Part shown: in pieces, positions 17,887 to 62,482 of the stretch
Layout: the number at the start of each line of letters is the position of its first letter
Numbering within the stretch: position 1 is the first letter of the stretch
Source of the DNA: Neoconidiobolus thromboides FSU 785
Lineage: Eukaryota; Fungi; Entomophthoromycota
Direction: 5' to 3'
Assembly (NCBI GenBank): GCA_025603075.1
Contig: MU626315.1
Span: 47,840-111,839, forward strand
Length of the DNA stretch: 64,000 bases
Notes under the pieces: model-generated
The model's input: the letters and a program-made list of their open reading frames with translations, nothing else
Databases searched by the model: none
What the model was told of the DNA's origin: nothing
Position numbers and translations under genes: made by a program

Positions 17887-17932
17887 GGGGTTGTCTGAAT
17901 TAGTTTCATTATTTTATCCAATTTTTGAAAAA
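17887..17932 (+). mobile_element. Putative terminal inverted repeat of the Sola-like element (related to the MITE end)
   Basis: ATAT|GGGGTTGTCTGAATTAGTTTCATTATTTTATCCAATTTTTGAA aligns with the MITE start GGGGATGTTTTTTTTAGCTTCATTATTTTTTCCATTTTTTAAG; lies ~500 bp downstream of the transposase 3' end. Confidence 0.6.
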
Positions 17933-18382
17933 TTTTGTATTTTAAAAACTTCGCTTAAAATTCCATAAAATCAAATCTTTATTAAAATAAAAGTACCCAG
18001 ACACAGTTCTAAATCATTCTATTATAGTTTATACTGTAAGTTAGTTGAATTTCTACTAGATCTTAAATACATATTCTTATAAAACTTTATTGAGAAATAT
18101 TTATTATCAACTGCTTTATAACCAACATTGTAGATTTGTTATCAAATAAATAAACTATTTTAATGTTGTAATTACATTATTAATATATTGCCAAGTTAAT
18201 AAATAGCTGCATGGGAGGGAGTGGTCAGCCCCAAAACTATAATTAACCATCCCTATATAGTACAAGTAATAATAGTTTTTACATATTATTACAGTTACTT
18301 GTTCTTTGACTATTTATTAACTTAGCTATTAATAACTTAAGTAATAGTAACATTTAACAATCTATTTCTATCATTTAACAAA

Positions 18383-19580
18383 CTACTTAGTAAACATCGA
18401 AATTTTTAAATTCTCTGTTATTTTCGTAAGATAAGCTGGGATTGATCTTTTAATTTTTCTATTTTCTATAGACTCTATAACTCTAATTGGAACTATATTG
18501 CTTTTTTTTGATGTATCAGATACTGGATAACAATGTAGTTTATTGTTACATTTAACAAAATGTAAATACTTTTTAATGCCTTATATTTTTATCATTTTTT
18601 TTGTATTTTTGTTTCTTTCATAGTTTTTAAAAATTATAACTGTTTTTGTATTATTAACAGTTGAGTTATTAATTTTATTATGCTCGCAAATAAAAGCCTC
18701 AAATCTTGAAATTAATTGATTGATATCTTCTATTTTACCTAACGCTTCAAAACTACTTTTCCATTTTGAAAGGTTTCCGAAATGTCCATCAACTATACTT
18801 TTTCCATGATGCTCAACAAAAAAATTAACATCAATATTTAAACTACTATTTATTTTAGAAACTTGTTTAAATATATAATGTAGGAACTCTTGGGATCTAA
18901 AATGGCTTCCTGTATCTGCCCATATATTAATTTTTGTGAACTTTTTAAATAAAAGCTCTGTAGAGATTAAATCGATTAAACAATCTCCTGCATATCCTGA
19001 ATCATGATTTAATATTTCAGATAAATAATCAAAGTAAACTTTACCTATTGTTTTATCATCTTTTAAATATAAAACACCAAAACCTAATGCCGATATAGCT
19101 TGTTTATTATAATGATCTAAATTTATTGAATCTGGTCTTGTTCCTATTTCCATATTTTGTTTAAAATCTAAAATTATTATACAACTTTTATTATTTAATT
19201 TTTTAATAGCTTTATTAAATGTGTTTTTTTAAGTATCAACACAGAATTTATGTAATTTGTATAATTTTTCTTCTTCATTGAAAATTTCTTCTATCTCTGC
19301 TTTGTTTTTTATTGCTGTATTTATTTTCAAATAACTTTTTTCTAACTGTATACTGAGCACATATATTACATAGATCTGTTTTTATTGCTGGATTTTTGAA
19401 ATTACTTGGTATATATTTAAAAAATGTTGACCTAGCTACCACTTTATCTCTTAAATCATTAAAATATTTACTATATATCATTCTTCTACTTTTATTTAAT
19501 ATATATATTATCTGATGAATATTTACTATCATTATTTTTTTTATTAAATCTTGATGAAATAGTTGAATCATTTAGTAAAT
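18383..19580 (-). pseudogene. Decayed Sola-like (Sola2-type) DDD transposase, 5'-truncated
   Basis: Joined frames give STFFKYIP.NFK...TDLCNIC, then H......*...F...I..L...CIIILDFKQN, INIWADTGSHF, FFVEHHGKSIVDGHFG and KI*GIKKYLHF. One frameshift near 19300, in-frame TAA at 19229-19231 and 18581-18583; cut off at 19580 by a MITE. Confidence 0.75.
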
Positions 19581-19680
19581 GGGAGTGTTTTTTTTTGACT
19601 TCATTATTTCTTGCATTTTTTAAGCACTATTTAAGTGGAAAATTTGTTAGTAAAATTCTTAAACACAAAAATACATCCCC
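19581..19680 (+). mobile_element. ~100-bp MITE copy (orientation A); flanks AAAT / ATAT
   Basis: GGGAGTGTTTTTTTTGACTTCATT...AAACACAAAAATACATCCCC; imperfect ~15-bp TIRs. Confidence 0.9.
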
Positions 19681-19684
19681 ATAT

Positions 19685-20540
19685 ACTGTTTGGGACATCA
19701 TAATTTCCAATGGTAATCTTCTACTTTTCAAGGGTAAAACAGCCATTAATGGCCTTTTTATGGTCAAGGACTGTATCATTCCATTTCTAACACCCGTTTA
19801 ATATACTACATTTTACATTTGGTTAAGATTCACCTTTGATTTATTTAGAATCTTTTTAATTTTTAAATTTACCTACCTAAACAAACTTTATCTATGACTA
19901 GTTGAACTATCACACTAAAATATTCATTTATCGTTTTGATAATATCTAAATTAGTAAGAAAATATTCAGATTCATTATCTATAAGTATCCTTTGACTATC
20001 TTAATGTGAATGAAATTATTCCAACTTAATATTTACTTCAAAGCATAGTTGATAATATACAATGGCTTTTGCTTAATATTACTTTTGTAAATTAATGCTT
20101 CATATTTTATCCTTCTTCCACCATCTATCTGTATATCCATTTTTCTACATCGGTATTTTCCTTTGGTTTTATTTTATTTCGACAAATCATTTGTATTATA
20201 CTACTATATTTAATATTTAAATGCTCTGCTTACTTTCTCACTGATTTTCCTTCTTTATTTACCAATTTAGATAAATTCTTTTTGGCTTTGTCGCTTATTA
20301 CACTACACTTTTTTAGGGGGACTTTTTAATTCATTGATTTCTTATATACTTATTCCACCTTCATCCACCATACTTGCTTTTTTTGACTTTGTAATTTTAG
20401 TTAATATCTTTCATCACGAATAATATTCTGAGCAATGCTATATTTAGTAAATAAATGTTATGCTGCTTCCCTTATATTCATTGTCCCTCCACTCATTATC
20501 TTAATCAATTTCTTCATAATTTCTATCTCTTTTAGGAAAT
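19685..20540 (-). pseudogene. Decayed duplicate of the 3' end and downstream flank of the six-HTH gene (matches ~36153..37025)
   Basis: Reverse complement contains ATGAATATAAGGGAAGC, TATTATTCGTGATGAAAGATAT, AAAAAAGCAAG.AT, GTTAGAAATG.AATGATACA.TCCTTGA.CATAAAAA.GCCA and CCTTGAAAAGTAGAA, collinear with 36153-37025; contains stops and indels. Confidence 0.88.
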
Positions 20541-20718
20541 TTTATTTCTTTTTTTGGACCATTATAGAGTTCACTAAAAGTTTCTGCAACAATTTAATAA
20601 CCTTTTAGCTACTTAGTAAGAATTTATAAGTTCTTTTTTTTAAACTATGTAAAACAAATTTCCTTTAATATATAAAATATAGTATATATTTATATGAAGC
20701 TTAGGTCTGGAAATATAT

Positions 20719-60577: not shown

Positions 60578-60719
60578 TTCAATTTAATTATTACGACCTA
60601 AAATTATATATTACTCTTAATAAATTTTTTTATAAACTCTATCTATAATTTTAAACAAAGACCCTGTTAAATTAAGTTTATTATACTATTTTATTATATA
60701 TATATCAAATTAACTATAT

Positions 60720-60817
60720 GGGGATGTTTTTTTTGGCTTCATTGCTTCTCCATTTTTTAAGTGCTATTTGAGTGGAAAAATTGTTATTGAAATTCTTAAA
60801 CAAAAAAATACATCCCC
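60720..60817 (+). mobile_element. MITE copy (orientation A); flanks ATAT / AAAT
   Basis: GGGGATGTTTTTTTTGGCTTCATTGC...AAACAAAAAAATACATCCCC. Confidence 0.92.
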
Positions 60818-61390
60818 AAATAGCAAAAGTCTTAAGTGTGGCATCAAGAACTTTAAAGTCGGTTTTTTTGATAGACTTAAAAACTTAATTGAATTGCGCT
60901 TTTCATTATAGAGATCATTCTTACCTAGTTTGAATGTATTGCCTAAAATTTCAAGCCTAAATATGTCGCCATCAAAGTGAATGATTTCAATAGTTTTATA
61001 CTCTTGAGTTGTCTCAAGCCGCAAAACAACTCGGTATCAAAATGAACATTTCTATCAATTGTTAAATCTAAATTTGAAATAAAAGTAGCACTAGTAATTT
61101 CTCAACACTAGCATTAATATCTCTTCCTGATTCTAGAGTTAGTATTTTAAGCTAGTAGGCTTTGTTTTAAGGTTATCTAATCGATCAAGAGATGTATTTC
61201 ATATTGAATTTAGTTTCAATGCTTTCAAGCTAGTTGGACTTAAGCTGACGGTACACTATCCAACAAGTAAATTATGTTCAATAATTTCAAACTCTTCTAG
61301 CTGGTGTAACTTTGAAGGATCTAGCTCACGTAACAATATAAAATACTAAATCAAGTCAAGCCTCATCTTTTTCAGTTTTGCTAAGTTCAG

Positions 61391-61711
61391 TTAGAGCATC
61401 ATAGGATTATTGCCATTGTAATTAATAATGATATTGTATAGATAATTGTTACTATCATGATTCCAGTTGTTATTATCCACATTGTAATTAATCCCATGAT
61501 CATTATTGACGATATTAACCCAGTTATCACCACACTTGTTGTCGATATTGTCGTCCCAGTCACCAAATTGATCACAATTATTATTTTTCTAGCCATCAAA
61601 GTGACCACAGCTGTTATCGTCACCATCCCGACCATCCTTACTATTTGTAATAGCGATTGCCCTTTGATAAGTTAAAGAAATTATATTTAAACAATAAACC
61701 AAATATTTCAT
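61391..61711 (-). pseudogene. Small secreted Asp/Asn/Gly-rich protein with one in-frame TAG
   Basis: MKYLVYCLNIISLTYQRAIA ITNSKDGRDGDDNSCGHFDG* KNNNCDQFGDWDDNIDNKCGDNW...NNPMML*; TAG at 61589-61591; this frame is not in the ORF track. Confidence 0.55.
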
Positions 61712-62388
61712 AGTCTTATCAGCCATATTTAAATGTTTCAAGGACCCGTTTTTTATGATAAACTCTTCTTGATAATCCCAATACTTTTCAAACTTTATAT
61801 TTCCAACATTGTCATATATGCCTTTACATCATCCTATAACTTGATTCAATTTATATATAATACGTTAAGTTTTTTTGACTACATTACTTACAACTTTAAA
61901 GGTATCTTTACTCAAAAAATATAGATAATTCAACTGGTTCTATGTATTTGAAAATTTCCAATAAAGTTTTAGATAATAACTCAAATTTCAATGTCATCTT
62001 AAATTATTATAAACAAAGGAATGTCACTTTAAGTTTAAGCTTTTTAATAATTTACACAAGCTTCATTTGAACATACCCTATAAGTGAGATTAAACAAATT
62101 TAGCTTTTAGTTAGCCGGTTTGAACAGTTTGATTGGACTTTAATCAACTACATCTCATTAAATTATCTATGTTTTAAGTTGAACCACCCTCCTTTTCACC
62201 AATATTGAATATTTACATAGGTATTTAGTTACGTGCCCATAGACGCTCCACTACCTTAAAACTTCCTTAGAAATATCAACTTTTTAATATATGAATAGAC
62301 CATCTAAACCTTTTAGCTTTTATTTTTAGTTTATAATAGTTTTGTTGTTTCTATCTCTGAATGCCACATGATTTTTTAGAACTTAAAT

Positions 62389-62482
62389 GAGAATGTATTT
62401 GTATTTGAGAATTTTACTAATAATTATTCTACTCAAATGGTGCTTAAAAAATGGAAAAAATGAAGCCAAAAAAAACATCCTC
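62389..62482 (-). mobile_element. MITE copy (orientation B)
   Basis: AAAT|GAGAATGTATTTGTATTTGAGAATTTTACTAA...GAAGCCAAAAAAAACATCCTC. Confidence 0.87.

Follow-up and report, generated by a model that had tools for sequence, protein, structure and literature searches.

A family of MITEs (miniature inverted-repeat transposable elements) and the decayed remnant of a transposase were analyzed in a 64,000-nucleotide stretch of DNA, referred to here as the window, from Neoconidiobolus thromboides FSU 785 (assembly GCA_025603075.1), an entomophthoralean fungus in Zoopagomycota. Three comparison contigs of the same assembly (L001, L002 and L003) were included. The two elements very probably belong to one Sola2 cut-and-paste system, in which a transposase with three catalytic aspartates (DDD) would recognize ends that begin with GGG, integrate at AWWT sites (two A/T bases between an A and a T) with a 4-bp stagger and move the MITEs in trans. 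The finding adds, with good support, a new fungal record to a known kind of transposon; it is not a new kind of system.

The MITE family

BLASTN with the family consensus and an nhmmer profile built on 11 full copies agreed on 18 MITE copies in the window, all between positions 19581 and 62482 (Table 1). The profile identified a further 16 copies in 40 kb of L001, L002 and L003, giving a total of 34 in 104 kb, a density of roughly one copy per 3 kb. The copies are 91-104 bp long (typically ~98 bp), contain no open reading frame (ORF) and are on average 89.4% identical to their own consensus (range 83-95%), with 280 transitions and 51 transversions. They start with GGG(G/A) and end with (C/T)CCC, the ends forming an imperfect inverted repeat of ~16 bp, and nine copies lie on each strand of the window. 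A first-pass annotation of the window, made from the sequence, had described 18 copies of 90-104 bp with imperfect ~15-bp terminal inverted repeats starting with GGG, in close agreement with these values. Its reading of the flanks as AATT/AATT at 53759-53857 and as AAAT/AAAT at 42815-42913 (plus strand; ATTT/ATTT on the minus strand) was also correct. A direct match to the leading 25 bases of the consensus, with up to three mismatches allowed, was not obtained because the length of the T run differs among the copies.

Every MITE in the window is located between ORFs, often no more than a few hundred bases from the end of a gene. The family as a whole is found mostly between genes and close to gene ends, and some copies are inside their own parent elements. 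A local pile-up is present at 41970-43130, just downstream of a receptor-like gene (40657-41625), where six copies occur within 1.2 kb and one of them is nested in another. The distribution along the window is uneven, with no MITE in the first 17.8 kb (1-17800) and 18 copies in the remaining 46 kb. The MITE-rich part is also poorer in G+C (0.18-0.25 around 16-34 kb).

Target site duplications

The MITE makes site-dependent, AT-rich direct duplications of 4 bp. Both ends were readable in 28 copies, and the flanking 4-mers were identical in 19 of these, while random 4-mers at the same spacing match by chance in 1.2% of cases. Matched flanks, which the first-pass annotation had put forward as target site duplications, are thus far above the chance level of AT-rich DNA. 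When the right flanks were shuffled among the copies, the mean number of matches was 7.7 and none of 100,000 shuffles reached 19; the duplication therefore varies with the site. The matched flanks were ATAT (10 copies), ATTT (4), AAAT (3), AATT (1) and ATTA (1). All eight non-palindromic pairs (three AAAT, four ATTT and one ATTA) were direct and none was inverted, and therefore the 4-mers are duplications; an inverted repeat that extends into the flanks was ruled out on this basis. The AWWT pattern was found in 22 of the 28 left flanks, compared with 7.4% of the 4-mers of the window.

Filled and empty sites could be compared in two cases. The MITE at L002:6828-6925 interrupts the transposase gene at ATAT, and this ATAT is single at the same place in the window and in L001. 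Furthermore, excising the nested MITE at 42815-42913 together with one ATTT returns the host MITE to the normal length of the family. Contig ends around the MITE ends in four DNA sequencing runs gave ATAT as the consensus flank.

Other superfamilies with short AT-rich targets were considered and rejected. Tc1/mariner-Stowaway elements duplicate TA, and the matched flanks AAAT, ATTT and AATT contain no TA. PIF/Harbinger-Tourist elements duplicate the 3-bp TWA, and the duplications found here are 4-bp AWWT. The piggyBac and Kolobok target, TTAA, was not present as a flank among the 28 copies.

The transposase and its placement in Sola2

The motifs DFKQN, WADTG and HGKSIVDG, which the first-pass annotation had ascribed to a decayed transposase, were all found in one reading frame of the minus strand, within a coding remnant that is broken by a frameshift and in-frame stops (Table 1). 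The closest proteins are three gene models of N. thromboides FSU 785 with 75-91% identity, and 766 relatives at E<=0.001 were recovered from a set of 1.84 billion representative proteins. In a 63-core alignment, numbered from window:18584-19228(-), the residues D21, K23, N25, D105, H141, G142, K143 and D147 are invariant. The spacing of the triad (D21, D105, D147) is D-84-D-42-D, and a TD-C-x2-C motif lies upstream of the core. The full transposase is estimated to have ~550-600 residues.

An AlphaFold model of the core (mean predicted local distance difference test score, pLDDT, of 92) has the strand/helix order of an RNase H-like fold. In the model D21 is on strand 1, D105 is just after strand 4 and D147 opens the helix that follows strand 5, which places a putative DDD triad on this fold. 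Sola is reportedly a 'DDD' superfamily. Foldseek matched the core model to retroviral integrase cores, the IS21 transposase IstA, RNase H and an IS630 transposase. Additionally, the structural neighbours of the best feature hit in a protein Atlas include IS630- and ISAzo13-type transposases. In the homolog from Smittium, DUF7869 scored 20 bits, below the Pfam cut-off of 26 bits; the Atlas likewise points to DUF7869, which is a lead and not a classification. A sequence profile search of the PDB with the transposase gave no match.

The transposases of Sola2_DFa-2 and Sola2_PPa-1, printed in supplement 3 of PMC3627910, were employed as Sola2 references. The remnant in the window contains six of the blocks conserved in these references, and their order is unchanged: RSTF-K--P (block 1), TD-C--C (block 2), DFK(E/Q)N (block 3), LNH-S-Y (block 4), W-D-G-HF(K/R)S (block 5) and HGKS-VD-HF--LS (block 6). 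The summed BLOSUM62 block score of the remnant was 236 against DFa-2 and 205 against PPa-1, compared with 113 ± 8 and 109 ± 7, respectively, for shuffled peptides. The aspartates of DFa-2 (D326, D413 and D456) are spaced D-87-D-43-D. The Sola-type transposase of the first-pass annotation was borne out by these blocks, and specifically as Sola2. At the level of sequence the placement is supported by a positive match to the Sola2 references, Sola2 being the one Sola group that was compared.

An intact homolog of 596 residues was observed on a G+C-rich eukaryotic metagenome contig (L005:4444-6234) in a transposon-rich region. A tyrosine-recombinase gene flanked by perfect inverted repeats of 241 bp is located upstream of it, and a Ty3/gypsy element downstream.

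The autonomous element

The transposase is encoded by an element of ~2.45 kb, of which full-length copies were found in L001, L002 and L003 and a 5'-truncated copy in the window (Table 1). Its inverted ends are ~24 bp long and begin 5'-GGGGTTGTC. The element starts with 5'-GGGGTTGTCCGAATTGGTTTCA in L001, L002 and L003 and finishes with ...TGAAACTAATTCAGACAACCCC-3'. The first-pass annotation gave 5'-GRG as the start of Sola2 termini; the termini observed here are GGG or GAG at the start and CCC or CTC at the end. Homology of the window copy to the full-length copies ends exactly at 19580 and 17887. On the former side the copy breaks off at an ATTT in the gene, and the MITE at 19581-19680 begins at precisely this point. 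The other limit, 17887, is also the start coordinate of the first-pass annotation; no MITE is present there, and the position marks the inverted 3' end of the autonomous element, whose sequence is similar to a MITE end. The four copies are 86-93% identical in pairwise comparisons.

The MITE at 19581-19680 and the 3' part of the transposon at 17887-19580 are together bounded by ATAT on both sides (17883-19684) and could have moved as a composite, for which the outer end of the MITE and the transposon's 3' end would serve as termini. To the left of 17887 the sequence is not homologous to the paralogous 37-kb locus, and no paralogous empty site was found. In L001 an inverted partial copy of the 5' region of the autonomous element (L001:2942-3250, 78% identity) abuts the 3' end of the element, a nested or rearranged second copy.

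Abundance and age

The short-read contigs of the four DNA runs, which carry three organism labels, break at every MITE copy. The contig depth summed over the MITE bins, a rough proxy and not a copy number, was 2,000-7,000x the depth of unique single-copy flanks, and about 7,500-13,000 contig pieces per run matched the MITE. The family probably comprises several thousand copies in total. The very high abundance that the first-pass annotation had claimed agrees with this depth and with the census of the 104 kb.

The family looks like an old burst with no sign of current activity, and the system is probably inactive because the MITEs are ~10% diverged, the autonomous copies are 86-93% alike and all broken, and insertions are shared with X4, the most divergent run. 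The insertions present in X4 are those at 53759, 56950 and 57589. In the same run two contigs cover the stretch of a glycosyltransferase gene (window 55016-55351 and 55841-56202); one is identical to the window and the other has 25-36 differences. The X4 sample possibly holds two divergent alleles or strains.

Proposed mechanism and alternatives

In the proposed mechanism, the Sola2 transposase would bind the inverted ends and excise the element. Insertion would take place at AWWT sites, mostly ATAT, by cuts staggered by 4 bp, and repair of the staggered cuts would duplicate the 4-mer. The same enzyme, from the transposase lineage examined here, would move the MITEs in trans. The MITE itself would be a ~98-bp non-coding derivative that retained only both ends, namely GGGG(A/T)TGT and some subterminal sequence.

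Several observations weigh against this interpretation. No significant Pfam hit was obtained for the ORFs of the window or for the ten homologs checked, nine of which had no hit of any kind. At the level of sequence, the support for Sola2 consists of summed block scores and not of a full-length E-value, and the reference sequences exist only as supplement text. The dictyostelid Sola2 proteins were not among the hits of database searches, and a query with the core region gave only metagenome proteins. Moreover, none of the four autonomous copies has an intact transposase; all are broken, and their four-way consensus is broken too. No empty site or presence-absence polymorphism was seen between strains in the four runs, in which contigs break inside every MITE. 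The depth values were summed over contigs and are read only as support for a family of thousands. Two further points, the moderate likeness of the ends and the length of the duplication, bear on specific alternatives.

The terminal 8 bp, GGGG(A/T)TGT, are common to the MITE and the autonomous element. In gene orientation the 5' end of the MITE resembles the 5' end of the element and the 3' end resembles the 3' end. One of these matches is identical at 32 of 50 positions (32 of 2,000 shuffles were as good) and the second is 31/50-like (69 of 2,000). The cross-wise pairing, given as MITE 5' end against autonomous 5' end, scored at the level of chance. An internal-deletion derivative would be expected to show such a pattern. 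However, the ends are only moderately alike past the first 8 bp (about 64% over the following 40 bp, ~64% over 50 bp), and a closer parent subfamily may exist. The true parent of the MITE would then be a different Sola2 subfamily of the same genome, and the 2.45-kb element only a cousin with the same terminal 8 bp. Such a parent is compatible with a Sola2 system, but it is rather unlikely. The 5'-to-5' and 3'-to-3' pairings score above shuffles and the cross-wise pairing does not, the MITEs and the 2.45-kb element are of similar age, and only the transposase lineage examined here was found among the high-identity fungal gene models. The autonomous/MITE system of the first-pass annotation is supported in its main points, with qualifications: related ends are present in the full-length copies, while the window copy is a 5'-truncated pseudogene and the element is possibly a cousin of the true parent.

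A second alternative concerns the duplication. If the element ended in T-GGGG...CCCC-A, the true duplication would be 2 bp (WW) at A^WW^T, as in IS630/Tc1-like elements, and the apparent 4-bp duplication would be part element sequence and part target preference. For every AWWT target, a 2-bp duplication with T...A element ends predicts the same sequences as a 4-bp duplication, and for these targets the two cannot formally be told apart. The IS630 transposase among the fold neighbours, and the IS630- and ISAzo13-type transposases among the structural neighbours of the Atlas hit, also fit a 2-bp duplication. However, ATTA/ATTA at about L003:4190, the only such case, fits 4 bp without an extra mutation. 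The duplicated dinucleotides would include AA, TT and AT and not TA alone, and therefore do not represent the TA duplication of Tc1/mariner. Published Sola2 elements with homologous transposases have 4-bp AWWT duplications (PMC3627910). A 2-bp duplication is accordingly given very little weight beside the 4-bp stagger of the Sola2 mechanism.

That the repeat is not transposon-derived at all, but a short interspersed nuclear element (SINE), a hairpin at a recombination hot spot or an artefact of assembly, can practically be dismissed: it has inverted ends, site-dependent direct duplications, a nested insertion and a further insertion in a paralogous gene copy for which the empty site is known, it occurs in equal numbers in both orientations without a poly-A tail or tRNA-like head, contigs from four independent DNA runs contain it, and the comparisons of filled and empty sites contradict such origins.

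Features of the window

Table 1. Transposase, autonomous element and MITE features. Positions without a contig name are those of the window.
Feature	Position	Strand	Flanks	Remarks
Decayed transposase coding remnant	18400..19571	-		one frameshift near 19275-19300, two in-frame stops
DFKQN motif	19154-19168	-		predicted catalytic D1
WADTG motif	18908-18922	-		predicted catalytic D2
HGKSIVDG motif	18785-18808	-		predicted catalytic D3
Autonomous element, full length	L001:496-2941		ATAT/AAAT	
Autonomous element, full length	L002:4954-8038		ATAC/ATAT	struck by two MITEs and a further insertion
Autonomous element, full length	L003:9519-11883		ATAT/ATAT	
Autonomous element, 3' 1.7 kb	17887..19580	-		5'-truncated; 89-93% identical to the full-length copies in L001, L002 and L003
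3' terminal inverted repeat of autonomous element	17887..17910	-		...CAGACAACCCC, then ATAT at 17883-17886; same end in L002 and L003
MITE	19581..19680	+	AAAT/ATAT	at ATTT site of transposase gene
MITE	20719..20816	-	ATAT/ATAT	
MITE	26578..26668	-	ATAT/GTAT	
MITE	41970..42057	+		degenerate 5' end
MITE	42277..42363	-		terminal GGG lost
MITE	42548..42646	+	ATAT/ATAT	
Host MITE split by nested MITE	42740..42938	-		3' part 42740-42814, 5' part about 42914-42938
Nested MITE	42815..42913	-	ATTT/ATTT	AAAT on plus strand
MITE	43041..43130	+	ATAT/ATAC	
MITE	49976..50079	+	ATAT/ATAT	5-bp internal duplication
MITE	50639..50735	+	ATAT/ATAT	
MITE	53759..53857	+	AATT/AATT	insertion common to divergent run X4
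MITE	54551..54648	-	AGAT/ATAT	
Degenerate MITE	54851..54930	-		
MITE	56950..57047	+	ATAT/ATAT	insertion common to run X4
MITE	57589..57686	-	AAGT/AAAT	insertion common to run X4
MITE	60720..60817	+	ATAT/AAAT	
MITE	62393..62482	-	TATT/ATTT	

The window is strongly AT-rich (G+C 18-32%) and contains fungal genes for an MFS transporter, a Zn2Cys6 factor, a UDP-glycosyltransferase, a tyrosinase and a rhodopsin-type receptor. A TA-rich microsatellite at 20930-21060 gives rise to long spurious ORFs, with YLYLYL repeats on one strand and KYKYKY repeats on the other. Immediately upstream of the transposon's end there is a direct repeat of ~240 bp with 72% identity (16537-16776 and 17443-17686).

An intact ORF of 673 residues on the plus strand (34533-36554) consists of repeated helix-turn-helix modules (Pfam HTH_23, HTH_28, HTH_Tnp_ISL3, HTH_29 and others) and resembles the DNA-binding array of a transposase without a catalytic domain. 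The 3' end of this gene, together with ~465 bp downstream, makes up the stretch at 36154-37019. Its paralog, which is inverted, decayed and 71.5% identical over 874 bp, adjoins the MITE and transposon remnant at 19694-20538.

Novelty and significance

A survey of fungal cut-and-paste transposons reported one case of Sola2, in Aspergillus flavus, placed Sola1 mostly and Sola3 exclusively in Rhizophagus, and proposed horizontal transfer (PMC5751038). A literature search, which did not reach Repbase or Dfam, found no paper that describes this Sola2/MITE family in Conidiobolus or Neoconidiobolus. With its ends, target duplication, transposase and derived MITE, the N. thromboides family provides a complete Sola2 anatomy for a second phylum-level lineage of fungi, and the relatives in Harpellales extend the known fungal range of the Sola superfamily. 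The contigs break at every MITE copy, and gene callers have stitched false gene models, such as P0001-P0003, from the decayed transposase; the masking of repeats and the annotation of N. thromboides and related genomes would therefore benefit from a curated consensus.

A broader scenario can be put forward only tentatively. Sola2 might be an old, vertically kept component of Zoopagomycota (Entomophthoromycotina and Harpellales) and not a rare horizontal visitor. The amplification in N. thromboides, with one copy per ~3 kb, several thousand copies and most of them within a few hundred bp of gene ends, might be among the densest known fungal MITE bursts. A functional master copy could persist, and the MITEs could have reshaped gene regulation.

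Comparison with known systems

The dictyostelid Sola2 elements described by Bao and Jurka (2013) have inverted ends of 12-22 bp and 4-bp AWWT duplications (ATAT, AAAT, ATTT) (PMC3627910). They are DFa-1/2/3 of Dictyostelium fasciculatum and PPa-1/4/5 of Polysphondylium pallidum (PMC3627910), and they have the same block order as the N. thromboides transposase and a near-equal D...D...D spacing. Short inverted ends (16-24 bp in N. thromboides) and 4-bp AWWT duplications are common to both. The machine-read supplement 11 gives GAG...CTC ends for DFa-2/3 and GAA...TTC for DFa-1 (PMC3627910); complementary ends that start with G are thus found in DFa-2/3 as in N. thromboides (GGG/GAG...CCC/CTC). 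The DFa-2/3 ends are compatible with the 5'-GRG start given in the first-pass annotation. The dictyostelid elements are 10-15 kb long, have captured a Fanzor1 gene and encode a transposase of at least 888 residues, whereas the N. thromboides element is 2.45 kb long without a passenger gene. Unlike the dictyostelid elements, it has spawned a very abundant 98-bp MITE.

Among 20 relatives looked up by cluster, two were named proteins, and these are the nearest named relatives: PVZ96810.1 of Smittium angustum and PVU96560.1 of Furculomyces boomerangus, with 39-42% identity over the core. Both are gut fungi of the Harpellales and, like N. thromboides, belong to Zoopagomycota. On the Smittium angustum contig (L004) the element is bounded by ATAT followed by GGGTGATCCC... 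on one side and by ...GGGATTACCC followed by ATAT on the other. It has GGG...CCC ends, an inverted repeat of ~21 bp and ATAT on both sides, and provides an independent check from outside N. thromboides. Unlike the broken copies of N. thromboides, the ~3.56-kb Smittium element has an intact single-exon ORF of 516 residues.

The 4-bp AWWT/AWDT target duplication has been called a hallmark of Sola1 (PMC3845634). The insect Sola1 MITEs (Sola1_NA, in Bombyx mori and Rhodnius prolixus) have this duplication, and their ends also start with GG (PMC3845634). However, they are longer (194-709 bp), their inverted ends (GGACCGTTTATTTTG...) are unrelated and their partner is a Sola1 transposase (PMC3845634). 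The Stowaway MITEs of Tc1/mariner and the Tourist MITEs of PIF/Harbinger are likewise small, AT-rich, abundant, located near genes and mobilized in trans. Stowaway duplicates TA (2 bp) and Tourist TWA (3 bp), and the AAAT, ATTT and AATT duplications of the N. thromboides MITE exclude both.

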